DNA of 64,000 nt from Thecamonas trahens ATCC 50062 (taxonomy: Eukaryota; Protista; Apusomonadida): positions 1 to 64,000 of the forward strand of contig NW_013657670.1 of the NCBI RefSeq assembly GCF_000142905.1, given 5' to 3'. Made by a program: the position numbers and the translations under genes. The notes under the pieces were generated by a model. The model made no database searches and was not told the origin of the DNA. It saw only the letters and a list, made by a program, of their open reading frames with translations. This document shows, piece by piece, positions 3,976-57,994 of this stretch (the stretch's first letter is position 1; the number at the start of each line of letters is the position of its first letter).

Positions 3976-6900
3976 TTAGGTTGATGGGCCTGCAGGGTTG
4001 ACCATCTCGGCCACCAGGTTGGCCGCGCGATTAGCAACATCGGCTAATGCGCGGGACGGCGAGGTGGTGTGCCAGTTGTGGGTTTCGGCGCCGTAGTTTT
4101 CCAGGGCGTAGACGGTGGCAACATGATCGGCCTTGCGGGCGGGCGTGAGCTCGGGGTGGCGCCAGAGTCCGTACTGCTCTGCATGGTCGGGCGATAAGAA
4201 CGAAGCGTCCATGATCCTGAGCACGAGGTGCTGCGGGTCGGCCGTATCGACGTCAGCGGCGTGACGGAGCGTATTGGGCGAGATGTCGCTACAGATAAAG
4301 ACTGGAAGTAGCTTACAACGGCCTGCATCGGCTTCAGCGAGGGCAGCTTTGGCCTCTGCGATGGCCCAATGTGTGACCATCATGTGCTTGGATACCAGGA
4401 CGATGACGACACGCGAGGCGCGGACATGATCAGCAAGATCATCGGGGTACTCGCAGCGCTCACCGTCAAGCGACTTACTGTCGAGGAAGACGCAGAGTCC
4501 GCGGGCGGTGAGGTCGTCGTAAAGATCGAGGGCGGCGCCCTTGTCACCGCCGCCATGGCAAATGAACACGTCCCAACGCTTGAGGCTATGCTTTTGCTCC
4601 TCAGCTTCGATGATCTCGAGCTTGTCGACCACCGCCGTCATTCCCGGTCGTTGCGCGGGGCTAGCACTCCAGCACTTGCGAGCAAGCGCAACGTACACCT
4701 CCGATGCTCCCATGGAAGGCTCAAACTCTGGCCGTATCTCATCTTGCAACACCGCTTGCCGGATGCCCCGCTCATCGAGACCAGTACCCTTGTATGGGTA
4801 CGATCCCGCGGCCAGCTCCCACATCACAACACCAAACGAGAACACATCTGCTTCCTTCCCGTACGTGTTCTCCTTGCCTGATACCATCACTTCCGGCGCC
4901 ATCCAGCGGAACGTGCCTGCATTGGTCGTTGCCACGCCATTGCCCTTGAGCTTTGCCAGTCCAAAGTCCGCTACCTTCAGACGCATCCGTCCGCTCGCTC
5001 CGCTTAGGAGTAAGTTCGGTGACTTCATGTCGCCATGCACTACGCCTTTGCTGTGCAGATACGCCAGTCCGCGTGCAGCATCCAATGCAAGGGCTGCGGC
5101 GACCTGGGGAGGAAAACGGCCGTACCGCTCGTGGTAGTCGAAGAGCGAGCCGCGCTCCATCAGCTCAAACACAAGCGCAGGTCGCGGTCCGCTGTGATTT
5201 GTCGCAGGCATCATCGACAGCCCGAGAAACTGCACAATGTTCGGATCACGCAGCTTACCCAGCAGGACCGCTTCGTCTTTCAGTGAATGTTGCAGTGCTG
5301 ATACATCCGCCTCGGGCGCTAGCTCCTGCGTGAACAGCACCTTGACCGCCACTGGTGTCTTGGCCCGCAGGCCACGGAAGACGCGTGCGTGCGCACCATG
5401 GCCGAGCTCGTCCTCCTTGAACACCTCCAAGTCATGCATGGCAACACGCTCGTGGCTCGATGGCGCAGCAGTGGTGGGCATGTTGTTGGACTCCAGACCT
5501 GGCTGGGTGTTGGAGTACACGTAGAGCCAGGGTTCCGGTTTCGGTGGAGTGGGTGTGTCGAGGAGGAACAGCGCAACGTCGTTGCCACGCAGTGCGGCAT
5601 GCAACGGCGTCTCGCCTCCATTGTTTTCCTGATGGATTCGAGCCCTTCCCTGCGTCACCAACACTCGCGAGATATCGACATGGCCGTGAGCTGCTGCGAC
5701 GTGGAGCGCTGTGTTCCCGTTAGAATCAACCGTGTTGGCAGCAGCGCCGAATCGGAGCAGGTGGACGACTACTTCGGTGAGGCCGGCAGCAGTTGCATGC
5801 ATCAGTACTGTTTGGCCATCGTGAAACGATTCAAGTGGTGCTCCCGCGGCAATGAGGGTGCTAAGAAGATCCAAATCAGCCTTGAGGGTGGCGCCGAGAA
5901 GAGGAGCATGACCATCAACGGTGGCGGTCTGGACGGCGCGAAGGAAGTTGATGATGCGGGTGTAACCACGCATACTAGTGACGTCCAGTGGCTGAGCATC
6001 GACAAAAGCCCGTAGAGCTTGTGTACGTGTGGGGATGACCTTGGCACCACCTGCAGCCACAAGACAAATGACTACCTCCAGGTGGTTGTGTTGCGCAGCG
6101 ACGTACAACGGCGTGCCTCCGTTGTTTTTGGCCTTGTCGACTGCTGCCCTGCCTCCGTTCACCAGCCATCGCACCATATCCAGTTGACCCTTCGCGGCAG
6201 CGACATACAGCGGCGTGGCTCCGTTCTTCAAAGCCATGTCGACCGCCGCCCTGCCCTCGTACACCAGCCATTGCACTGCATCCAGACAACCCATCTCGGC
6301 AGCCATGTACAGCGGCGTGACTCCGTTGGTCAAGGTCGTGTTGACCGCCGCCTTTCCCTCGCCCACCAGCCACTCCGCAACATCCAGGTGACCGTTATGC
6401 GCAGCAATGTACAGCGGTGTGGCTCCGTTGTTCAAGTCCTTGTCGACCGCCGCCTTGCCCTCGCCCACCAGCCACTTCACAACATCCAGGTGACGGTTAT
6501 GCGCAGCGATGTACAGCGGTGTGGCTCCGTTGTTGCTAGCCTTGTCGACCTCCGCCTCGCCCTCGCTCACCAGCCACTTAACCACATCCAGATGACCGCT
6601 TCGCGCAGCTATGTACAGTGGCGTGACTCCGTTGGTCAAGGTCATGTTGACATCCGCCTTGCCCTCGCCCACCAGCCACTTCACAACATCCAGGTGACCG
6701 TTATGCGCAGCAATAAACAGCGGTGTGGCTCCGCTGTTGCTAGCCTTGTCGACCTCCGCCTCGCCCTTGCTCACCAGCCATCGCACCACATCCAGATGAC
6801 CCATCTCGGCAGCCATGTACAGCGGCGTGGCTCCGTTGTTGTCGGCCTTGCCGACATCCGCCCTGCCCTCGCCCGCCAGCCACTGAACCACTTCCAGGTG

Positions 6901-8190
6901 CCCGCTATGCGCAGCAAAAGACAACGGTGTGACTCCGTCGTCGTCGGTCTCGTCGACTGCCACCTCGGACTTCTTCACCAGCCACTGTACCAAGCCTAGG
7001 TAACCCTGCTTCGCAGCGCTGAGCAAGCACGTGGCTCCGCTGTCCTCGTCTTGGTCAACCTCCATCCCGTATGCGCTCACCAGCCACTGCACCACATCCA
7101 GGTGGCCTTTCTCCGCAGCAACGTACAGTGGTGTCCATCCGTTGTTGTTGGCTTTGTCAACCTCCGCCCGGCCCTTGCTCACCAGCCATCGCACCACATA
7201 CAGATGACCCATCTCGGCAGCCATGTACAGCGGCGTGGCTCCGTTGTTGTCGGCCTTGCCGACATCCGCCCTGCCCTCGCCCGCCAGCCACTGAACCACT
7301 TCCAGGTGCCCGCTATGCGCAGCAATAGACAACGGTGTGACTCCGTCGTCGTCGGTCTCGTCGACTGCCACCTCGGACTTCTTCACCAGCCACTGTACCA
7401 AGCCTAGGCAACCCTTCTTTGCAGCGTTGAGCAAGCACGTGGCTCCGCTGTTCTTGACTTGGTCAACCTCCGTCCCGTATGCGCTCACCAGCCACTCAAC
7501 CACATCCTTGTGGCCTTTCTGCGCAGCAATGTACAGCGGTGTGGCTCCGCTGTAGCTAGCCTTGTCGACCTCCGCCCCGCCCTCGCTCACCAGCCACTTA
7601 ACCACATCCAGATGACCGCTTCGCGCAGCTATGTACAGTGGCGTGGCTCCGTTGTTCAGGGCCTTGTCGACCGCCGCCTTGCCCTTGCCCACCAGCCACT
7701 CAACCACATCCTTGTGGCCTTTCTGCGCAGCGATGTACAGCGGTGTCCATCCCTTGTTGTTGGCTTTGTCGACATCCGCCCTACCCTCGTTCACCAGCCA
7801 CTCAACCACATCCTTGTGGCCTTTCTGCGCAGCAATGCACAGCGGTGTCCATCCCTTGTTGTTGGCTTTGTCGACATCCGCCCCACCCTTGCTCACCAGC
7901 CACTGCATCACATCCAGGTGTCCACCCCAGGCAGCAGCCATCGCCGCCGTCCACCCGTCCGTCCGCCCATCCTCCACCCCCACCACCGCACTCCCCACTA
8001 GCCACTGCACCACATTCTTCCGCCCCATCCGCGCCGCGCCCGTCAGAGCCGTGTCCTGGTACACAACCCGGTCATTGACCCCGGACACCACTTGATCCTT
8101 CACCGCCACGCCACCCTCCACCAGCTCCTGTACCCTCTCCAGGTCTCCCGCGCGGGCCGCACGCACAAGCTCCTGCACCCCGCCGCTCAT
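3976..8190 (-). CDS. Ankyrin repeat (~25) + TKL-type protein kinase + C-terminal TIR domain protein, 1404 aa
   Basis: 34-aa TPLxxAAxxGHLxVVxWLV repeats; kinase motifs GHGAHARV, VAVK, HGDMKSPN, DFG, WMAPE; TIR motifs WDVFICH..DK, GLCVFLD, SRVVIVLVS, WAIAE. Confidence 0.93.
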   Translation of the reverse strand: MSGGVQELVRAARAGDLERVQELVEGGVAVKDQVVSGVNDRVVYQDTALTGAARMGRKNVVQWLVGSAVVGVEDGRTDGWTAAMAAAWGGHLDVMQWLVSKGGADVDKANNKGWTPLCIAAQKGHKDVVEWLVNEGRADVDKANNKGWTPLYIAAQKGHKDVVEWLVGKGKAAVDKALNNGATPLYIAARSGHLDVVKWLVSEGGAEVDKASYSGATPLYIAAQKGHKDVVEWLVSAYGTEVDQVKNSGATCLLNAAKKGCLGLVQWLVKKSEVAVDETDDDGVTPLSIAAHSGHLEVVQWLAGEGRADVGKADNNGATPLYMAAEMGHLYVVRWLVSKGRAEVDKANNNGWTPLYVAAEKGHLDVVQWLVSAYGMEVDQDEDSGATCLLSAAKQGYLGLVQWLVKKSEVAVDETDDDGVTPLSFAAHSGHLEVVQWLAGEGRADVGKADNNGATPLYMAAEMGHLDVVRWLVSKGEAEVDKASNSGATPLFIAAHNGHLDVVKWLVGEGKADVNMTLTNGVTPLYIAARSGHLDVVKWLVSEGEAEVDKASNNGATPLYIAAHNRHLDVVKWLVGEGKAAVDKDLNNGATPLYIAAHNGHLDVAEWLVGEGKAAVNTTLTNGVTPLYMAAEMGCLDAVQWLVYEGRAAVDMALKNGATPLYVAAAKGQLDMVRWLVNGGRAAVDKAKNNGGTPLYVAAQHNHLEVVICLVAAGGAKVIPTRTQALRAFVDAQPLDVTSMRGYTRIINFLRAVQTATVDGHAPLLGATLKADLDLLSTLIAAGAPLESFHDGQTVLMHATAAGLTEVVVHLLRFGAAANTVDSNGNTALHVAAAHGHVDISRVLVTQGRARIHQENNGGETPLHAALRGNDVALFLLDTPTPPKPEPWLYVYSNTQPGLESNNMPTTAAPSSHERVAMHDLEVFKEDELGHGAHARVFRGLRAKTPVAVKVLFTQELAPEADVSALQHSLKDEAVLLGKLRDPNIVQFLGLSMMPATNHSGPRPALVFELMERGSLFDYHERYGRFPPQVAAALALDAARGLAYLHSKGVVHGDMKSPNLLLSGASGRMRLKVADFGLAKLKGNGVATTNAGTFRWMAPEVMVSGKENTYGKEADVFSFGVVMWELAAGSYPYKGTGLDERGIRQAVLQDEIRPEFEPSMGASEVYVALARKCWSASPAQRPGMTAVVDKLEIIEAEEQKHSLKRWDVFICHGGGDKGAALDLYDDLTARGLCVFLDSKSLDGERCEYPDDLADHVRASRVVIVLVSKHMMVTHWAIAEAKAALAEADAGRCKLLPVFICSDISPNTLRHAADVDTADPQHLVLRIMDASFLSPDHAEQYGLWRHPELTPARKADHVATVYALENYGAETHNWHTTSPSRALADVANRAANLVAEMVNPAGPST

Positions 8191-39637: not shown

Positions 39638-40652
39638 TCAGTAGCGGCGTTGGCTCCAGCCGCCGCGCGAGCCGCCACGGCCACGACCACGGCCGCCACC
39701 GCGACCGCGGCCACCGCCAAAGCGCGAGCCGCCGCGCCCGCCACCAAAGCGGGAGCCACCACGGCCGCGACCGCCACGGCCGCCGCGACCACGGCCGCCA
39801 CCGGCGCGCTTGGCCTTGGACTTGGGCTTCTTGGGGCCTGCGGGCTTGGGCAGGAAGCGCGAGAGCGGGAGGAGCTTCTGGGTGTCGACATACACCTTGA
39901 AGCCCGACTTGAACGAGTCAGCCTGGACGCCCTGCGCTGTCTTGACGGTAAACATGACCGAGTTAATGGCGCCGAGCACGTCGTCGATCTTGCCCACCAG
40001 CGCGTTGTTGTCAGAGTACACCATGGCGTTAAAGTAGGGGATCATGGTGTTGGTCGACTTGAACACAAGGTCGCCCTCGCACGGATGCACAAACTCACCC
40101 AGCTCTGCACTCGTACATGTTCGTCCGCCCTGGTAGTGAGTACACCGCCTGCTCACACGCCCCTGCTCGCGTCAAGGTGGATGGGCCGCCGGGATGGCAC
40201 TCGCCAGAGGGAGTGGGCGACTGGCCGAGCCCCCCGCACTCTTTGACAAACGCTACCGACCGCAATACACCACCGACAAAGCCCACACTAAAGACAAGGG
40301 AGCATGACGATATAGACTACACCCATGTAGATTATGGAGAGCATGGTACTTGTATTCGCCACGTAGGATCAGGCGGAAGACCGACGAGGCCCACCGCAAG
40401 AATATCCCTCGCCTCGGCCCGACGCACACACACCCGCTCGGCGACTCGGGGCCAACCCAGGGGGCGGGGATGGAGATGGGAGGGGGGGGGGGGAAGGGGG
40501 AGGGGGAGGGGGAGATCAGAGAAAGACGTACCAGCAACAGCCTCCGGAGGGCCCGAGTTGTAGCCACCGCCGCCACGGCCACCGCCATACGAGCGTCCAC
40601 CGCCGCGTCCACCGCGTCCGCCACGAGAGCCGCCGCGAGACCGCCACGACAT
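39638..40652 (-). CDS. GAR1: H/ACA RNP subunit GAR1; exons 40652-40532 and 40104-39638, intron 40531-40105
   Basis: RGG boxes at both ends; spliced [41 protein letters not shown]; GTACGT...TGCAG intron. Confidence 0.95.
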
Positions 40653-40767
40653 TATCAGAGAGGAGTATATACCTCTTCCAATGTCTGTCACCAGTATTAA
40701 TCGTTTGTTCACCCAACCACGCTCTCGCCATGATCCGAGCCACGCGCAAAGCCACACGTGCCTCAGC

Positions 40768-41637
40768 TTAGGGGGTACCGGCAGCGGCGGCTGCGAGAGC
40801 GGCAGCGCGCGCGGCGTGTAGCTCGGCAAGCGTGCCGGAAGCTGTGGCTGCATCGACGGTGGCGCGCCAGGCTTCAGACGAGACGCACGTCGCGATGTGG
40901 CCGCACACCGGACACGAGTCCTTGCATTGCTGCGAAGATGCACAGCTCGCACCGCAGGCGAGGCCCTCGGAGCACTGGTTGTACACGCAGTGCCGGCACG
41001 ACGGCGGATTCGACGCGCACTCGCCCGACGAGATGCACACCTGGCCACACGATGCGTTGTGCGCGCAGTGGTACGCCACGCACGACGGGCACGTCTCGGA
41101 TGCCTCACACTCGCCCGACGACGAGCAAATGGTGCCGCAGACCGGGAGTGCTGGCGGTGGCGGCGGCGGCGGAGACGATCCGGGCACGCAGCCCTTGGCC
41201 CAGTCCGAGTGGCAGGCACAACAAGTGATCGAGGTACCCGGAACGGCAGCACATGGCGCGCCAGGCTCGTTGTCGACCACGCACGCGCCATCAAAGCCGC
41301 CGCAGAAGCTCCCGCAAAGCGGATCCGGATTGACACACTGGCGGGTCACGTTGTTGCACGTTGTGCACGGGTTGCCTCCTCCGCCGACTCGGCAATCAGC
41401 ATCAATCACGCATCCAGCACCACACACTGGCTCGCAACGACCAGATCGTCCACATAGAGCACACGGATTGTCAAAGCGGTCGCCAGCGGTGCAATCTCCC
41501 GAGCTCGTGCACTCACTCCCGCACCAGTGGGTAGGCGACGAGAGCGAGGAGGAGGAGGAGGAGGTGGAGGAGGAGGGGACGACGATAACGACGACGACGA
41601 TGATGACAGCGAGGAAGAGTGAGAGTAAGACGTGCAT
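40768..41637 (-). CDS. Secreted Cys-rich protein with six C-x3-C-x5-C-xn-C-x2-C-xn-C knottin-like modules, 289 aa
   Basis: Signal peptide MHVLLSLFLAVIIVVVV; modules start CGSEC, CGAGC, CGSFC, CGTIC, CGQVC, CGASC. Confidence 0.8.
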   Translation of the reverse strand: MHVLLSLFLAVIIVVVVIVVPSSSTSSSSSSLSSPTHWCGSECTSSGDCTAGDRFDNPCALCGRSGRCEPVCGAGCVIDADCRVGGGGNPCTTCNNVTRQCVNPDPLCGSFCGGFDGACVVDNEPGAPCAAVPGTSITCCACHSDWAKGCVPGSSPPPPPPPALPVCGTICSSSGECEASETCPSCVAYHCAHNASCGQVCISSGECASNPPSCRHCVYNQCSEGLACGASCASSQQCKDSCPVCGHIATCVSSEAWRATVDAATASGTLAELHAARAAALAAAAAGTP

Positions 41638-41818
41638 GGCAGTCACAGGTTGGGGGAAGGGGAGAGGTGCTGGGTGTTGGTAGCAGAGGCCAATGACGAC
41701 GACGACGATGACGACGACGACGAAGGAAACGAGGACGACGACGACGAGGACGACGACGACAACGAGGCACGCGTGCGGTGACCCCTTCCCTTCCCCTCCC
41801 CACCCCACTCCCCCACTC

Positions 41819-42922
41819 ATGGACACGCCACCCCCTCGACCCATATCGATATACCACACAACCATATCTCCTGTCGATCACGAGCAACATGTGGCTGACG
41901 GCGTGCCGTATGTCGTCCGCGGCGGGGTGAGCTGCTGGCCAGCCGTGGCCGATGCAGACGGCGGCAGACGATGGACGGCAGACTCGCTGCTGAGCCTTGT
42001 TGATGACCCGGAGGTGACGGTCCGTGTACGATCTGCTGCTGCGGAGAGAGGCAAGTCTCTCCTTGCTGGCGATGAGTGGCTCGGCAAGCCTGTGGCCATG
42101 TCCTTTGCCACCTACGTCACAAGCCACTGGGCGGTCAACGACAGCTCGGTCTATCTCGCCTCGCTGCCCATCGTCAAGTACTTTCCGGCGCTTATGGAGA
42201 CGTACGTAGTGCCACCGCCGGCGGCGAGCCAAGGCAAGGCCGGCAATCTCTGGCTCGGCAGTGCAGGGCAGATCACGCCGGTCCACTACGACTTCTCCAC
42301 CCGCGAGCCCGGCATGGACGGCCTCCACGCCGTCGTCGCTGGCACCAAGATCTTCCGCCTCTTTGACCCAGCCGCCAACCTCGGGCGCATTCCACGCCGT
42401 CGCTCGTGGTGGCGCTGGCACCAGGGCGCCATCGACGTGCTCGACCCGGATCTGGACACCCACCCGGGCTTTGCCGAAGCTGCCTGGGACGATGTCGAGC
42501 TCGCCGCAGGCGACATGCTCTTCATTCCCAAGCTCTGGTGGCATCACGTTCGCACCACTACGCCTGCTGCCGCCGTCAACTTTTGGTTCCAGTCGCGTGC
42601 CTCGGAGGAGCTCAAGCTTACCGTCCATCGCCTCGTCATGGAGGAGCATCTCGCCTCCGCCGCCGCCATGGTCGTGCCCCGCGACCGCCTCGCCAACATA
42701 GTTGCCTTTTACGCCAAGTCGGCTCCGCCGACCGGCGACGCCCTCGATCGCTACCTTGCTGCGCCTGCCCGCGTCATGGCCCTCGACGCCTTTCTCGACA
42801 TCTTTGCCGCCATCGGCGCCGACCGCGCCGGCGCCGAGGCCGATCCAGACCTTGCCGCCCGCCTCCGTGCCCACGTCGCTACCTGGATCGACGCGCATCT
42901 GAGCGCACACCTGCTGCAGTGA
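41819..42922 (+). CDS. JmjC / cupin_8 2-oxoglutarate Fe(II) oxygenase (JMJD5/HIF1AN-like)
   Basis: NLWLG..ITPVHYD (HxD), GTKIFRLF, LAAGDMLFIPKLWWHHV, AVNFWF. Confidence 0.88.
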   Translation: MDTPPPRPISIYHTTISPVDHEQHVADGVPYVVRGGVSCWPAVADADGGRRWTADSLLSLVDDPEVTVRVRSAAAERGKSLLAGDEWLGKPVAMSFATYVTSHWAVNDSSVYLASLPIVKYFPALMETYVVPPPAASQGKAGNLWLGSAGQITPVHYDFSTREPGMDGLHAVVAGTKIFRLFDPAANLGRIPRRRSWWRWHQGAIDVLDPDLDTHPGFAEAAWDDVELAAGDMLFIPKLWWHHVRTTTPAAAVNFWFQSRASEELKLTVHRLVMEEHLASAAAMVVPRDRLANIVAFYAKSAPPTGDALDRYLAAPARVMALDAFLDIFAAIGADRAGAEADPDLAARLRAHVATWIDAHLSAHLLQ

Positions 42923-43027
42923 GCCTCTCTTCGATCGTGCCTGATCCCGCCAGCCTCCTCCCGCTTTCCAGTGCACTAATGAAATACTGAACTCGTGCCG
43001 TTTGCCTAAAGGAAATGCTATTGCATT

Positions 43028-43099
43028 GATTGCGTGGTCTAGTGGTATGATACACCGTTTGGATCGGTGTGGTCCCAGGTCCGATTCCTGGCGCAGTCC
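43028..43099 (+). tRNA. tRNA-Pro(UGG), atypical A37 and C55
   Basis: Acceptor GATTGCG/CGCAGTC plus C73; TGGTCTAGTGGTATGAT D region; CACCG-TTTGGAT-CGGTG; CCAGG-TCCGATT-CCTGG. Confidence 0.9.
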
Positions 43100-43100
43100 G

Positions 43101-43110
43101 TATTTTTTTT
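43101..43110 (+). terminator. RNA polymerase III oligo-T terminator
   Basis: TATTTTTTTT directly after the tRNA. Confidence 0.8.
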
Positions 43111-43349
43111 ACCCCATTTCAGACCCTCGGCTGTAGCCCCACTGTGTGCGGACAGGTACATGGTGGCTTGTGCCACCACAGATAAGCTGTTGACTACCTT
43201 CTATGGTGTTGTCTACGCTGATGGGTTGGATGCCTCCAGCCTGTGTTCAAATTGGAGGTGTATATTTTTTTTTCACCCCCCCTCTCTCCCCCACAACCTT
43301 CTATTCCGTCCCTCTTCCCCTCAGCCCTCCCGCACCACCTGTCTCACTC

Positions 43350-44384
43350 ATGTCGTCGAGAGACAGGCTCAAGGCGGAGCTCCTTGAGCTCCGACGGCAG
43401 GCAGCGCGTCGCGGACTCAGCCTCGCCTTGCCCACATCAACTGGACGAAGCGGAATGGTGGCTGCCTCCAACAATGCCGGCGCAGATGAGCACATCCGGG
43501 TGGCGGCTCTCCGCGAGCTCATGGACGGGCCGACCGTGGTGGCGATGCTGGAGCGGGAGAACGAGCTGCGGCTGAGCACCAGAGTGCAAGAGCTGTATGC
43601 TGCGGCTGAGCGGCGGTCCGACACGGATTGGATGGAGGTGACTCTGGAGCTGCAGAAGCAGGTGGCGACCGAGTTTGGTTACGGGCCTGATCATGATCGG
43701 CATGACGATGTGCTGGTTGTTCTTCGCCGCGCTGCTGCGATCTATCCCGAACTTCCAGAGACGGCCGCCATTCCACTGTATGTCAAGCACAACCGCGCGG
43801 GTGAGGGCCGAGTCGTTGCTGGCGAGGCCATCGTTGACGTGCCGCTCCTGCCACTGGCCGACGGCGAGATCGGGTGTCGCACGTCACTCACTGCTCTGCT
43901 GGCCGGGGCTGGCGAGCGGCCGCTGGTGGTCATTGCCGGCTCGTACTCGTGACCGCCCATCCGCGGCATGGTTCCTATGCTGCATGAAATGTACGACGGC
44001 CTGCGTGTTGAGCACGGCGAGGCTGCGCCGGCGTGGGCCTTTATCTACGTCGAGGAGGCGCACGCTCTTGACGAATGGCCGATCTCGTCGTCGCGCTACC
44101 ACCCGACTGGCGAGGTAGTGGCGGTGGCACAGGCCAAGACGGTGGACGACCGTGCAGAGGCCGCCACCCACTTTGCCGACCTGTACCAGCTCCGGCTGCC
44201 CGTCTTTCTCGACACGCTCGACAACGAGTTCCAGACCACGTACGGCGCGTGGCCGCTGCGGTTCTATGTCTTTGAGGCATCTACCCTGGGCTACAAGGCC
44301 ATGCCTGCCGAGTGTACGTACTCGATCTCTGACCTGTGGGCCGCCGCCTCGGCAGCGTGCACCCGCACGGCCAGCGCCCGCTAG
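43350..44384 (+). CDS. Iodothyronine deiodinase-like selenoprotein, 344 aa, Sec at codon 201 (TGA 43950-43952)
   Basis: RPLVVIAGSYS-U-PPI (cf. RPLVLNFGSCTUPPF), then in the same frame FIYVEEAHALDEW, FLDTLDN, YGAWPLRFYV; SECIS downstream. Confidence 0.9.
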
Positions 44385-44410
44385 GCCCTGCGCACCAGCA
44401 GGCTGCGCTC

Positions 44411-44485
44411 GTCGCCACATGACGCCTCTGTCCTCAACCGCAACGCTCTGTTGCGGCGGACATCGAGGCCGACTCCTCTCGCGAC
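44411..44485 (+). promoter_or_regulatory. Eukaryotic type II SECIS element
   Basis: Helix I GTCGC/GCGAC; core ATGA (44419-22)...GA (44471-72); helix II GCCTC-TGTCC/GGACA-tc-GAGGC; unpaired AA; ministem CCGCAAC/GTTGCGG. Confidence 0.9.
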
Positions 44486-44498
44486 GTGCTTGACCAAG

Positions 44499-45488
44499 TC
44501 AGCTCCGCTTCTTAAACCGACCGCGCTTTCCGGCAAACTTCTTCTGGCCGCTTGGCTTTGACGACGACGGCTTGGCCGGCCCATCGGGGGCGTTGGGCTT
44601 GGCGCCGGCGTCCGCGTCAGGAGCCTTGCGGGCGAGCTCGTCAAAGTCGACGAACGACTGGTTGTCCGGGATAAAGTCGCCAAGGAGAAAGGCAGCGGCG
44701 TAGACCCAGGCGGCGAGGACAGTCAGGACGGCCTGGACCGAAATGAGGTAGTAGGCGAGCGGCGCGCCGGCGGTGGTCCCCACCAGCAGCCAGAACGGGA
44801 TCCGGAGCTGCAGCAGAAGCACCTCGAGCTCGTCCTCGGCGGCGTAGTACACGCATACGAGGCGCCAGGCGACGGCCCATGCCGCGGCGGTGGCGGCAGG
44901 TGCCAGGCCGAGGATCCAGTAGAGGGCGATGGCGACGAGACCAGATCCGACCGCAAGCAAACGGGCTGAGCTGGCCGGAAATGAGGCAACCATGGTAAAG
45001 ATGGCCCACGAAGCCAGGGCAGCAAGCGCCTCTGGCGACCACCAAAAGAGAAGCGGTGGCGAGAAGAGGAGCACGCCGACAAAGACGACGCCGATCTTGT
45101 GGGACATCTCGCGGGAGGATGACGAGGTCGCGTCCGACTTGCGGAGCATGTGCTGGGCGACAAAGACGGCGACGATTTCGATGACGAGAACAGCACCTCC
45201 CAACCAAGCCCTCAAGCCCATCGAGGTCGCCGCCCATGATGTGGCCACAATGACCACAGCAATGCCCGCTAGAATGCTCCTGGCCATAAAATCCTGTCCG
45301 CGGACAAAGGCCTCGTCCTTGCCAGCCAGCTCTTCCTCGCTAGGCCCGGGCATGTTGTAGATGGCCCTCAGCACCCATGCGCCACCCAGACTCACTCCCA
45401 ATGCCAGCGCAATACTGAAGAACTTCCACAGCCCATACACCCCGCATGAGAAGACAACCAGTACCAGAGCCACCCGCTCCCACCGCAT
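44499..45488 (-). CDS. Uncharacterised multi-pass membrane protein with KKxx ER-retrieval tail, 329 aa
   Basis: About 8-10 hydrophobic segments; ends FKKRS. Confidence 0.7.
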   Translation of the reverse strand: MRWERVALVLVVFSCGVYGLWKFFSIALALGVSLGGAWVLRAIYNMPGPSEEELAGKDEAFVRGQDFMARSILAGIAVVIVATSWAATSMGLRAWLGGAVLVIEIVAVFVAQHMLRKSDATSSSSREMSHKIGVVFVGVLLFSPPLLFWWSPEALAALASWAIFTMVASFPASSARLLAVGSGLVAIALYWILGLAPAATAAAWAVAWRLVCVYYAAEDELEVLLLQLRIPFWLLVGTTAGAPLAYYLISVQAVLTVLAAWVYAAAFLLGDFIPDNQSFVDFDELARKAPDADAGAKPNAPDGPAKPSSSKPSGQKKFAGKRGRFKKRS

Positions 45489-45940
45489 CCTCGCTTCGCT
45501 TCGCCTCGCTTCGCCTCGCCTCGCCTCGCTCTGCCGAGTGGAGTGGTCCTGTCTGCAACCCCCCCCCCCCCCCCCCCCCTTCCCCCCCCTCCCCGCCACA
45601 CCGCCCAGCTGCACACAGCTAATACCTACAATATCACAGGCGATCGGTCGATGTGATGGTACTCCAAACCTATCTCCAGCCACAGTCCTCACGCCCATCA
45701 TACCCATCACTCTCACTCTCATCGCCTGCCGCATGAGATGCTCCTATCGCTCTTGCCAAGGCCGACGCCACATCACCCCCCCCCCCCTCCCTCCCCCCTC
45801 CCTCCTCCTCCCCCTCCTCCCCGGCTCTCATCAATCACGATCAAATCTCCCCTCTTTTCTTGCCCTGCAGCACACTCTCTCTGCCTCGGCTTATGACCAC
45901 ACCGCCAACAGCACAGCACCTCTCTCCCACCTCTCTCCCC

Positions 45941-47025
45941 ATGTCCACCCTTCCCTCCACCCCGGACCCAGCCAACCCCCTCAAGGTCATCATTGACACC
46001 GAGTACGTCATGTCTTTGGCCATCGTCCTTTCCCTTCATCTCATCCCACGCGCATACCACGTGACTCACGCCGACACGCACGGCCTCCCCACCGCAGCCC
46101 GGGCGTTGATGACTCGATGGCTCTCGCCCTCGCTCTTGCCTCGCCCTCGCTTGAAGTCGTTGGTGTGACCATTGTCATGGACAATCACTCGGATGTGCAT
46201 CTGCTGGCGGCAAATGCTGCCAAGGTCATGGCTCTCTGCGGACGGAGAGACATCCCCATCTACGTCGGCGCGGAGCACCCGCTGGCGGAAGAGTACCACG
46301 GCCATTCCGGCATCCACGTCCACGGACAGAATGGACTCGGTGGCACCGAGCTTGACATGACCGATGCCATTGTGCCGAGCTCGGAGATGACTGCTGCCGA
46401 GTATCTTGTGCACGCCACCGCCGGAGGCGACATCTCGCTCATCGCCCTCGGCCCGCTCACCAACGTGGCTCTGGCTATCCAGGCCGATCCCGAGTTTGCA
46501 GCCCGCATCCCGGTCTTCTCGCTCATGGGTGGGACGGTCGACGGCGTTGGCAATGCCTCACCGTCGGGCGAGGCCAACTTTATCAACGATCCCGAGGCTG
46601 CCGCCATCGTCTTCGACGCCCCGTTCCCGGCCGTCATCATGGCTGGCCTCAACGCCACCCGCCAGGTCCCACTCTCGGACTCCTTCCGGGCCGCTATCAA
46701 GGCCACGGGCTCACCCGTCGCAGACTTTGCCCACGCTGCTTCAGCCGGCTACATCGCCGCCCTTGCCGAGTGGAATGCTCTCTCCTACGTCCACGACTCT
46801 ACCGCTGTTATGGCCCTCGTTCGCCCGGACATCTTCACCTCGAAGCTCGTCGCCGTCCGCGTCGAGACCAAGGGCGAGATCACTCGCGGTACCTCGGTCG
46901 CCGACTTTTCCGGCATTCACTGGCCAGGCGCTCGCAAGAACGTCCACGTCCTCATGACTGTCGACACCCAGGCGTATTACGACCACTACGTCGCCCGCAT
47001 CGCCACCTACGCCGCGCACTCGTAG
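45941..47025 (+). CDS. Inosine/uridine-preferring nucleoside hydrolase; intron 46003-46097
   Basis: Splicing GTACGT...CCGCAG rebuilds IIDTDPGVDD; HVHGQNGLG, LGPLTNVA, MGG, EANF..DPEAA, HD. Confidence 0.95.
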
Positions 47026-47040
47026 CGTAGCGCGCTCGCT

Positions 47041-48684
47041 TTACTTGCTCTCGTCAGCCACCTGCACAAACGTCACCGTCTCCCGCAGCCACGCGCCAAA
47101 GTCAAACGGCATCTCGGTCGTGCCTGCCAGCCACTCGTGCTCGCACAGCTCGCCAGCCGACGGCCGATCGTTCGGGTCGCGCGCGAGGCACGCCGCCACA
47201 AACTCCCGAAACGGTGCTGACCACGTCTCGGCCGGCAGCCACTCGTCAATCGGCGCGTCCTGCTCGCACACACACGTCATGTGCTTGAACACCTCGTCCT
47301 CGTTAAACTCGTACGGGTACTTGCCGAGCGCACACTCGACAAGAATGAGCCCAAACGCCCACACGTCACACGCAGACGTGTACCCGTCCTTGGCCTCGGT
47401 CGAGTTGATCCGCTCTGGCGACATGTACGTAAACGTACCCACAAACGTCGACGCCTTGGCCAGCGTCTGCGCAAGCTCGCGCGAGGTGCCAAAGTCAGAA
47501 ATCTTGGCCAGTCCCTCGGACGAGAGCAGGATGTTCGCCGGCTTGAGGTCACGGTGGATGAGGTGCCGCGTGTTGTGCAGGTAGTGCAGCGCGTTGGCGC
47601 CCTGCCAGGCAATGTGCCGGATGACGTCCTCCGACAGCGCGCCCGCCGACTGGAGCACAGACTCGAGCGAGCCACAGTCCATGTACTCGAGCGCTATCGT
47701 GATGAGATCGTCCTCGCGCCAGCACCCGAGCGAATTGACCACGTACGGGCAGTTCGACTGCGCATACGTCCGAACCTCTGTAAAGAGCTCCTCCCGCTTC
47801 CGCTCCGCGTCTGGAGTCGCCGCCGTATCCAGCCGGATCACCTTGCACGCCAGGAGCAAGCCCGTCTCTTTGTGGCACATCTTCGACACTGCACCTTGTG
47901 CGCCCTCGCCGAGCTCGCAAACAAGCTCCAGGTCCTTCAGCTGCAGATCGTGTACCAGCGAAAGCATTGGGTCGCGCTCACCGCGCGACGCGTTCAGCAG
48001 CTCGCCGCCATACGTATTGATGTCAAACACGCCGTCCGTGCCCGAGTCCGACGGCCCCGGTTCCACTGCCAGCGTGAGGCCCAGTCGCCCGCGCTTCTTG
48101 CCGAGCCCACCGCTCCCGCCGCGCTTCTTGACCAGGCTCCGCCGCGCCGGCCGCTTGGGCGCACTCCGCCCGCTCCCTGGCGAGCCTACAGCCGGCGAGT
48201 TGCTACACGAGTCCAGCGACGACAACGACGCTGCCAGATTGATCACCTGGATCTGCGGCGACTCGATCGAATCGTACTGGCTCTCGCTGCCCATGCTGGT
48301 GTTGAGCGGGGTGGCGAGTCCAGCCAGCCCAAGCCCGAGGCCCTTTTTCCACGACCCTTTCTTGCCCTTTCGCCCACCGCCAGCCCCGCCATCCACACCG
48401 GGGACTCCCGCGGGCGACTCGCCCAACGCCACCGACGGCGACGATGGCGACGACGGCGAGGAGCAGCCCTGTCCTGCAGCCGACGACACGATACCCATGC
48501 CCAGTCCTTGCCCACCAGCCCCACCGCTTGCAGCCATGGTCTCACCGCCACCCACCGCCACGCTCTCGCCGTCGTCCGAATCCGAGCCCGAGGCAGAAGC
48601 CGAAGCCGAAGCCGACGACGACGACGAACCATACCGAGCCTTGCCCGTCGCCTTGGTGGCGTGCACCACAACAGGGGACGACAT
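47041..48684 (-). CDS. MAP kinase kinase (STE7/MEK family), 547 aa
   Basis: LGEGAQGAV, EYMDCGSL, HRDLKPANILL, DFG, TLAKASTFVGTFTYMSPERI; D-site-like KKRGRLGLTL. Confidence 0.92.
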   Translation of the reverse strand: MSSPVVVHATKATGKARYGSSSSSASASASASGSDSDDGESVAVGGGETMAASGGAGGQGLGMGIVSSAAGQGCSSPSSPSSPSVALGESPAGVPGVDGGAGGGRKGKKGSWKKGLGLGLAGLATPLNTSMGSESQYDSIESPQIQVINLAASLSSLDSCSNSPAVGSPGSGRSAPKRPARRSLVKKRGGSGGLGKKRGRLGLTLAVEPGPSDSGTDGVFDINTYGGELLNASRGERDPMLSLVHDLQLKDLELVCELGEGAQGAVSKMCHKETGLLLACKVIRLDTAATPDAERKREELFTEVRTYAQSNCPYVVNSLGCWREDDLITIALEYMDCGSLESVLQSAGALSEDVIRHIAWQGANALHYLHNTRHLIHRDLKPANILLSSEGLAKISDFGTSRELAQTLAKASTFVGTFTYMSPERINSTEAKDGYTSACDVWAFGLILVECALGKYPYEFNEDEVFKHMTCVCEQDAPIDEWLPAETWSAPFREFVAACLARDPNDRPSAGELCEHEWLAGTTEMPFDFGAWLRETVTFVQVADESK

Positions 48685-56719: not shown

Positions 56720-57994
56720 CTACTGACGCTTGCCGCGACCGACGCGATGAAGGGTGGCAATGACCTGGGCGGCGGCGCTCGGCAGGCTCGCCACGTTGTA
56801 GGCGAGGCCGTGCCTCGCGGCAAAGGCGGTGATCCGCGGCGCAATGCGCGGGTAGTTGTGGCGCGGCATGGCCGGGAACAGATGATGCTCGATCTGATAG
56901 TTGAGGTGGCCGGTGAACCAGTCGGCGACCGCACCTGGGCTGAGGTTCTGGGTGGCGTCAAACTGGGCGGCGACCCACGACTTGGGCGAAGCCTGCGACC
57001 GCATCGAGACGATGCCCATGGGAAAGTGGTTCATGGCCGTGACCCAGGTGAACCACATCGACTCCAGCACACGGACCGCAAAGTAGAGGCCCGCCGCGCC
57101 CCAGAACGTGTGCCCACTCCACCCCATGTGCACGCCCCAAAACCGCGGCAGGTATGAGAGACCGAGCACAAGATCGAGCCACAGCCCACGCTTGACGCAG
57201 TCGACGATGTTAGTGATGAGAAAGACGACAGTGGTGACCAGTGGTGGGCCAAGAAGCCACCAGTACCAGCCCTGTGCAAAGGTGCCGGCCCAGCCCATCT
57301 CCTCCTCGGACATGACCTCGTCGAAGAGGAAGAGTGGCTCGTTGTGGACGTCCGGGTCGGCGTGCAGATGGTTTGGCTTGGCGTGATGTCGGTTGTGCCG
57401 TGACCGCCACCACGGCGACGACGCGCCTTTGAAGCCAGCCATCAGCACCTTGTGAGCCGCAATGTTCATCCATCGCGCCTTGAACACCGCCAAATGGCCA
57501 AAGTCGTGTTGCAGCCAGCCCGACTGGATCTGCGCCGTAGCAAGCACCGCCGCTGCCACCCAGAACAGCACCCACGACCCGCTCATTGCCGCCATCGTCG
57601 AGAGCCACACACCGCCCATCTCCATCGCCACAATAATCGCCAGCTGGAGAAGAAAGAAGCCCGGCTCGGCGTCAAACATGCCTTCAGCAGCAAGCTCTCG
57701 ACGAAGAGCGCGGAAGGAGGAGGTCACATCATCGTCGCCCTCAACCTCTACAGACTCGATTCGACGAGGCGCCATCGTTCCAATCTCAAGCGCAGGCAGC
57801 ATAGCGGTAGCCTTCCTGCCCGGATGAAATGCATCAAAGGCATCAGTGGCGTCTTGACCGAGGTAGTAGGTGAGGACCTTGCCGCCCGGATGGCGGGCAA
57901 TGAACTCGCTCACATCGTACACTCTGCCGGAGATGGCCAGCAACTTGCCGCCCTTGCGCAGCTCGTCTTGGCTGTACACACGCTCGTCCTTCAT
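56720..57994 (-). CDS. Front-end (delta-5/6/8) fatty acid desaturase with cytochrome b5 domain
   Basis: HPGG, HDFGH, HNRHH, QIEHH. Confidence 0.95.
   Translation of the reverse strand: MKDERVYSQDELRKGGKLLAISGRVYDVSEFIARHPGGKVLTYYLGQDATDAFDAFHPGRKATAMLPALEIGTMAPRRIESVEVEGDDDVTSSFRALRRELAAEGMFDAEPGFFLLQLAIIVAMEMGGVWLSTMAAMSGSWVLFWVAAAVLATAQIQSGWLQHDFGHLAVFKARWMNIAAHKVLMAGFKGASSPWWRSRHNRHHAKPNHLHADPDVHNEPLFLFDEVMSEEEMGWAGTFAQGWYWWLLGPPLVTTVVFLITNIVDCVKRGLWLDLVLGLSYLPRFWGVHMGWSGHTFWGAAGLYFAVRVLESMWFTWVTAMNHFPMGIVSMRSQASPKSWVAAQFDATQNLSPGAVADWFTGHLNYQIEHHLFPAMPRHNYPRIAPRITAFAARHGLAYNVASLPSAAAQVIATLHRVGRGKRQ

Follow-up and report, generated by a model that had tools for sequence, protein, structure and literature searches.

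Among the closest described relatives of the protein analysed here are the vertebrate deiodinases Dio1-3 (PF00837; 4TR3, 9H48), which combine a peroxiredoxin-like thioredoxin fold with a deiodinase-specific insertion and carry selenocysteine (Sec) in a G-S-x-(T/S)-U-P-P motif, Sec being specified by UGA together with a SECIS element in the 3'UTR. For Dio3, a proton relay comprising Ser167, Thr169, Tyr197, Glu200, His202 and His219 has been described, in which the histidine of the Q-H-R motif (His219) takes part, while the histidine of the EEAH motif (His202) is both a relay member and the proposed contact of the thyronine 4'-OH (PMC11592359). Relatives of these enzymes are also known from outside the vertebrates. 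For Dictyostelium, a deiodinase homolog that contains Sec and has a type II SECIS has been on record since 2007 (Lobanov 2007, PMC2375036), 'DI-like' selenoproteins have been described from invertebrates, protists, bacteria and the fungus Gonapodya prolifera (Mariotti 2018, 10.1101/314781), and DIO appears among the selenoprotein abbreviations given in 'The algal selenoproteomes' (PMC7539508). What such selenoproteins do in organisms without thyroid hormones has been a standing question since 2007.

A further member of this group is predicted at positions 43350-44384 of the window, i.e., of the whole 64,000-nucleotide stretch of Thecamonas trahens DNA that was analysed. The locus reads as one unspliced gene for a soluble PF00837-family selenoprotein of ~344 residues and roughly 38 kDa. 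Its intron-less frame extends on the plus strand from ATG 43350 to an in-frame TAG (44382..44384) and is interrupted solely by TGA 43950-43952, leaving an upstream ORF piece that ends ...VVIAGSYS and a downstream one that opens PPIRGMVPML. Coding part 1 (43350..43949, plus strand, residues 1-200) comprises an N-terminal helix, a disordered linker, a conserved helical domain (43470-43769, plus strand, residues about 41-140) and the first thioredoxin-fold strands, and terminates in AGSYS. The in-frame TGA (43950..43952, plus strand), read as Sec, provides residue 201 and falls into the column of Dio3 Sec170 in the profile alignment to Dio2/Dio3. Coding part 2 (43953..44381, plus strand, residues 202-344) completes the deiodinase-type thioredoxin fold and contains the deiodinase-specific insertion (YVEEAHALDEWP ... 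AQAK), and is followed by a type II SECIS element (44410..44486, plus strand) recognized by its RNA fold and by a core common to other genes of the genome. Since GC3 amounts to 0.72 on the 5' side of the TGA and 0.82 on its 3' side, both halves look coding; just upstream of the ATG, where the stretch is pyrimidine-rich, GC3 is 0.46-0.51. Additionally, a tRNA-Pro(UGG) gene detected with Rfam at 43028-43099, 250 nt upstream of ATG 43350, leaves little space for upstream exons. The preliminary description of this DNA had proposed two ORF fragments sharing one frame with a TGA between them (GSYS-U-PPI) and had expected automated annotation to split or truncate the gene. The shared frame and the splitting were both borne out, the gene-caller products from this contig being two separate proteins of 165 and 138 amino acids (P0004 and P0001). 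An intron removing the TGA, which would have spoken against that proposal, was rejected because the relatives align colinearly through AGSYS-U-PP. Overall, the identification as a recoded deiodinase-family selenoprotein with a helical domain and a deiodinase-type fold is assigned a probability of about 0.8.

Affiliation with the deiodinase family rests on sequence profiles as well as on structure comparison. The PF00837 search suggested in the preliminary description was run on the C-terminal piece and gave T4_deiodinase with E 6.6e-12 and a score of 45.7 bits, the cut-off being 27; in the PDB, the same piece matches mouse Dio3 and Dio2, with E 1.9e-6 for Dio3 4tr3. Using a family profile derived from alignment A1, Dio2 and Dio3 were matched with E 1.3e-29 and 2.8e-29, respectively, over the whole catalytic core and with Sec columns aligned. 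In this alignment the active site AGSYS-TGA-PPI corresponds to GSCT-U-PPF and GSAT-U-PPF and conforms to the G-S-x-(T/S)-U-P-P pattern. The TGA divides the thioredoxin fold in such a way that neither piece alone forms a complete domain; the two pieces of the window protein were searched apart, and the full-length relative P0024 (43-45% identity, W at the Sec position) was used as proxy for the fold. The best PDB matches of the AlphaFold model of P0024 (pLDDT 82.8, pTM 0.73) are Dio2 and Dio3, which Foldseek retrieves with E about 1e-12 and with TM values, by target, of 0.82 and 0.75; they are followed by ResA/TlpA-type oxidoreductases and 1-Cys or atypical peroxiredoxins, the peroxiredoxins with E 1e-8 or weaker. 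On this relative, the thioredoxin/peroxiredoxin-like fold is present and the deiodinase-specific insertion can be aligned to the Dio cores; its edges, EAH.DEW ... Q.K..(E/D)R, are kept across the family. No transmembrane segment was found in the window protein, the highest 19-residue Kyte-Doolittle mean being 1.21, in agreement with the lack of a membrane anchor proposed earlier.

Residue roles were adopted from PMC11592359 and mapped via the Dio2/Dio3 profile alignment together with the family alignment, and are hence putative for the protein described here. Of the six relay positions, five are kept or conservatively replaced: Ser167 of Dio3 is retained as Ser198, Thr169 is represented by Ser200, and Tyr197, Glu200 and His202 are all kept inside the sequence YVEEAH. 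The sixth, His219, is Ala in the window protein and mostly Pro, otherwise His or Thr, in the relatives. The relay is thus incomplete, and with His219 absent the protons may take another route than in the animal enzymes. Trp207, which stacks with His202 in Dio3, and Arg260 are likewise kept. The thyronine-binding clamp formed by His202 and Arg275 is incomplete too, with His202 present and the carboxylate-clamping Arg275 replaced by Pro within a family motif YKAQP that reads YKAMP in the window protein. Furthermore, Phe258, the gate of the thyronine cleft, is exchanged for Pro, and Cys168 and Cys239, the cysteines near the Dio3 active site, have no equivalent. A semi-conserved cysteine, Cys322, lies in a motif P..C(T/N)(Y/F) three residues past the Arg275 position and could resolve oxidised selenium.

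These assignments revise the preliminary description in several respects. There, the EEAH histidine had been taken as the relay residue and the Q-H-R histidine as the substrate contact, which interchanges the roles reported in PMC11592359. As a consequence of the mapping used here, the relay can no longer be called fully kept, given that His219 is Ala in the window protein and mostly Pro in the family, and the thyronine-contact histidine, previously considered lost, is in fact present if the proposed substrate histidine (Dio3 His202) is meant. A cysteine two residues before Sec, regarded as a deiodinase constant, is not one, because Dio2 has Ala at this position of the alignment. The proposal of a non-thyronine substrate is retained on other grounds: the histidine invoked as its sign had been misassigned, and the replacement of the clamp residue Arg275 by Pro is a better one. 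Together, the missing Arg275 clamp and relay His219 suggest that the substrate would not be thyronine.

The following course of events is proposed. UGA 43950 would be recoded to Sec by the genome's own Sec machinery, with the type II SECIS of the 3'UTR as signal, giving a protein in which a helical domain (residues about 40-140) is joined to a peroxiredoxin-like thioredoxin fold in which the deiodinase-specific insertion is preserved. The selenolate of Sec201 would then attack an electrophilic atom of the substrate, a proton would be delivered by the retained Ser198/Ser200/Tyr/Glu/His network (Dio3 Ser167, Thr169, Tyr197, Glu200 and His202), and the oxidised selenium would be reduced by an external thiol or possibly by Cys322. 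The chemistry is far less certain than the identity as a selenoprotein. Reductive dehalogenation of a halogenated aromatic comes close to an even chance and is the favoured candidate, peroxide or thiol-disulfide redox chemistry is a more tentative second choice, and some other reaction appears improbable.

The competing explanation that survives best is that of a thiol- or selenol-dependent peroxidase or disulfide reductase of the 1-Cys peroxiredoxin-like type, in which the likeness to deiodinases would reflect common descent and no dehalogenation would take place. Peroxiredoxins of the AhpC/TSA type are characterized by a PxxxTxxC motif and a conserved Arg. The Ser at the third position ahead of Sec in the window protein agrees with the (T/S)xxC part of this motif, but a Pro seven residues before Sec is missing. 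In favour of this explanation, the window protein lacks the relay His219 and the clamp Arg275, some relatives carry precomputed AhpC-TSA (PF00578) or Redoxin matches, and directly behind Dio2 and Dio3 the structural neighbours of P0024 are the ResA/TlpA-type proteins and 1-Cys or atypical peroxiredoxins already mentioned. Against these points, the edges of the deiodinase-specific insertion are preserved family-wide, and Dio2 and Dio3 are well ahead of the peroxiredoxins both in structure comparison (E 1e-12 versus 1e-8 or weaker) and in the profile search (E 1e-29 versus 3e-5). On balance, a peroxidase or disulfide reductase of this kind is considered rather unlikely.

The catalytic fold of the recoded selenoprotein is preceded by a domain with no match in Pfam or the PDB. 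As anticipated in the preliminary description, the N-terminal part is a soluble helical domain (residues about 40-140), and it is conserved in 53 relatives. In the model of the N-terminal piece, a helix (residues 3-21) and a disordered linker lead into a helix bundle from about 41 to 140, after which the first thioredoxin-fold strands follow; residues 50-140 are predicted with pLDDT >90. Among 54 sequences (the window protein plus 53 relatives), R74 and Q102 are invariant, and two motifs, (M)L.RENELRLS and IPLYVK(Y/H)NRA..G, are near-invariant. Neither the N-terminal piece nor its last 50 residues gave a Pfam match, and comparison of the N-piece model by Foldseek and VIA-align returned a best E of 1.7 and a best Z of 5.2, the latter for a designed helical protein, values at noise level for helical bundles, so that the PDB search yielded no convincing match for the helical domain. 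Sources of the helical domain combined with the Sec-deiodinase fold comprise one amoebozoan transcriptome, numerous metagenome contigs and an IMG/VR contig of 341 kb, and ESM-Atlas clusters with the module bear the labels Mucoromycota, ciliates, rotifers and Nucleocytoviricota. One of these, a 619-aa Mucoromycota-labelled cluster annotated with ubiquitin and T4_deiodinase, superposes on residues 1-260 of the P0024 model (TM 0.81 by query, 247 residues aligned, rmsd 2.2), which argues that the pairing of helical and catalytic domain is conserved.

In several relatives, the helical domain is accompanied by further modules. An F-box is located directly upstream of it in P0056, P0059 and others; in locus L002, a ubiquitin-like module and a RanBP-type zinc finger lie on the same strand as the helical domain and are called as separate ORFs; and in locus L022 a ZZ-like finger shares one ORF with the helical domain, its score of 17.5 bits being below the Pfam cut-off of 21.4. 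The window gene itself contains no F-box, ubiquitin-like or zinc-finger module. By analogy, these modules suggest that the helical domain tethers the enzyme to a partner or a substrate that is itself a protein. A broader reading, according to which an undescribed module of helical domain and Sec-deiodinase is spread across eukaryotes and repeatedly combined with F-boxes, ubiquitin-like domains and zinc fingers of the ubiquitin-binding type, forming a selenium-dependent redox or dehalogenating enzyme that acts on proteins or under ubiquitin-system control and not on a hormone-like small molecule, must be regarded as doubtful. On L002 (1361-3313 of a 208 kb JGI metagenome contig), an intron-split ubiquitin-like ORF, a RanBP-type finger ORF, the helical domain and the Sec-deiodinase follow one another in a row on one strand, and TGA 2423 lies between the finger ORF and 25 more codons of the same frame, which can already be aligned to the family; L002 could represent a single gene for several domains, in which a second TGA is recoded or spliced. 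On L022 (2443-3771 of an IMG/VR UViG of 341 kb and 42% GC, filed as viral), the ORF with ZZ-like finger and helical domain is followed by a TGA at the Sec column and by the deiodinase-like domain.

The same modules could be taken as signs of a protein serving mainly as regulator or adaptor of the ubiquitin system, whose Sec would sense redox state and whose helical domain would bind a partner without turnover of any small molecule. The F-box immediately 5' of the helical domain in P0056 and P0059, the same-strand arrangement on L002, the single ORF of L022 and the 619-aa Mucoromycota cluster (TM 0.81 over residues 1-260) are all compatible with such a function, yet the window gene is devoid of any such module, the ZZ score of L022 stays below cut-off and the L002 pieces are called as separate ORFs, while the strict conservation of the catalytic residues is that expected of an enzyme. 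A purely regulatory role thus appears quite unlikely.

Reading of the TGA as selenocysteine is backed by the relatives and by the genome. All five relatives checked at the DNA level (L002, L003, L005, L006 and L007) have TGA at the identical column, as do the IMG/VR contig L022 and two paralogs of the same genome (L012 and L013). In L002, L003, L005, L006, L007 and L022, the TGA is directly followed by PP(M/L/I/F)R, and the downstream frame is kept in every relative examined. At the protein level, a word search with the N-terminal piece retrieved 33 relatives, most of them 120-240 residues long and terminating exactly in ...AGSYS or ...AGSYT; altogether, dozens of database relatives stop at exactly the Sec residue. 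A few long relatives (P0024, P0032, P0046, P0047, P0049 and P0054) instead display W at the Sec position and each continue into PF00837. For P0024, which at the DNA level is locus L005, the codon is TGA and does not encode Trp; hence its W stems from a gene caller operating with another genetic code. The genome (28.7 Mb, GC about 63%) harbours tRNA-Sec (74 bits), SepSecS (285 bits) and SelD/SPS (193 bits), so that, for these three components, an absence of Sec machinery, named beforehand as a finding that would contradict the selenoprotein, does not apply. It also contains other TGA-containing genes of selenoprotein type, namely two GPx and one Rdx (SelW/T/H-type). A general reassignment of TGA was considered as well and rejected, since 12 of the 26 long, high-GC3 ORFs within the window terminate with this codon.

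The SECIS element starts 26 nt after the TAG (27 nt in the preliminary description) and lies 469 nt downstream of UGA 43950, and all motifs and helices of a type II element are present. Helix I is formed by pairing of 44410-44415 with 44481-44486; the AUGA (44419-44422) and GA (44471-44472) flank helix II, in which 44424-33 pairs with 44458-69 over about 10 bp; and the unpaired AA (44436-44437) is followed by a 7-bp mini-stem (44438-44456). With a scanner based on a simple AUGA / fold / AA / GA motif-plus-fold search, this was the single SECIS-like element on the plus strand of 42001-46000. The scanner was used in place of a covariance model because aligning six SECIS elements with MAFFT gave no structurally meaningful result. 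Rfam scans returned only the tRNA-Pro and noise and no SECIS family for 40000-48000, and the Rfam SECIS models did not match the element in a scan of 44380-44520 with E up to 10, which is the chief technical reservation about it. In the same genome, the scanner located like elements downstream, and on the same strand, of four TGA genes, i.e., the two GPx, the Rdx and the deiodinase-like paralog on contig C45, and a core c-AUGAC ... AA ... CGA is common to all five SECIS elements examined (window 44419-44472; L012 2042-2099; L016, minus strand, 1878-1938; L018 2196-2254; L019, minus strand, 2113-2167). Analogous AUGA..AA..GA hairpins occur in the 3'UTRs of L002, L005 and L006, 17-48 nt past their stops. 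As Rfam misses the window's element, a model built from the five elements with the c-AUGAC...CGA core could be used to list the whole selenoproteome of this genome. With a conserved TGA column, a PF00837 match and a SECIS-like hairpin, the earlier assignment as a deiodinase-family selenoprotein with a 3'UTR SECIS has been confirmed in its essentials, and the narrower claim that the gene encodes a genuine selenoprotein is, taken alone, very likely as judged from these sequence features. That the locus is no selenoprotein and instead a pseudogene (by nonsense mutation or assembly error) or two separate small genes, as the two gene-caller products and the missing Rfam SECIS match might imply, is scarcely credible in view of the shared TGA column in every relative checked at the DNA level and in both paralogs, a TGA dividing one thioredoxin fold, a SECIS with the genome's own core after the stop, and the presence of tRNA-Sec, SepSecS and SelD.

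The selenoprotein gene is not singular: its subfamily is widespread, and the same genome contains two deiodinase-like paralogs, one on contig C45 (L012) and one on contig C34 (L013). In the C45 paralog, the helical domain is present in diverged form and the Sec site reads GSRS-U-PPS; the reading frame of this paralog (L012 973-2004) opens with MGMHHST, in keeping with a signal for N-myristoylation (Gly2, Ser/Thr6). The C34 paralog has the Sec site NFGSWT-U-PPFRR, and the region upstream of this site shows no alignment with the helical domain. The SECIS-like hairpin of this paralog (L013 about 1925-1985) shows UCAU(CC) where an unpaired apical AA is expected, and its terminal stop is also TGA.

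Several other genes of the window were noted in passing. A convergent ORF of 411 aa (44499-45734, minus strand) has the appearance of a membrane protein of the multi-pass type and gave no Pfam match; as the 3' end of SECIS helix I is only 12 nt away from its stop, the two 3'UTRs must overlap. A JmjC/cupin gene adjoins the deiodinase-like gene both in the window (41693-42922, plus strand, Cupin_8/JmjC_2) and on the ENA contig L005 (1-1559, minus strand, JmjC and JmjN); subfamilies and orientations differ, and the adjacency is probably a coincidence. More distant are a 1404-aa ORF (3976-8190, minus strand) combining many ankyrin repeats with a protein kinase domain and a C-terminal TIR domain, and an ORF (56720-57994, minus strand) for a cytochrome-b5-fused front-end fatty-acid desaturase.

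Compared with known systems, the protein shares with peroxiredoxins and ResA/TlpA a thioredoxin-fold core with the nucleophile at the N-terminus of helix alpha-1, but matches to these proteins are much weaker, and the window protein possesses the deiodinase insertion and neither a CxxC motif nor a resolving Cys. With vertebrate Dio1-3, it has in common the fold and its insertion, the Sec motif, the UGA and SECIS, and the residues equivalent to Dio3 Ser167, Tyr197, Glu200, His202, Trp207 and Arg260. In contrast to these enzymes, it has a helical domain of ~100 residues in place of an N-terminal membrane anchor, a longer insertion, Ala for His219, Pro for both Arg275 and Phe258, and no equivalent of Cys168 or Cys239. 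In the Mucoromycota ubiquitin + T4_deiodinase cluster, helical and deiodinase-like domains are predicted in the same mutual arrangement, whereas that protein is about 360 residues longer (619 versus 259-277 for the P0024 model) and bears an extra ubiquitin-like domain. The DI-like selenoproteins, compared by their descriptions, resemble the window protein in being Sec-containing deiodinase homologs with a type II SECIS from organisms without thyroid hormones, and within the limited literature searched their published descriptions mention no helical domain. Deiodinase-like protist selenoproteins have been known from 2007 on, and the kind of protein is thus known; for the helical-domain subfamily and its association with the ubiquitin system, a limited literature search found no published description, and novelty is claimed provisionally. 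Standard gene calling cuts the whole subfamily at the Sec codon and thereby renders it almost invisible in protein databases. With its helical domain, strictly kept catalytic residues and, in some lineages, ubiquitin modules, this soluble subfamily offers a concrete approach to the role that the deiodinase fold had ancestrally, independent of hormones.
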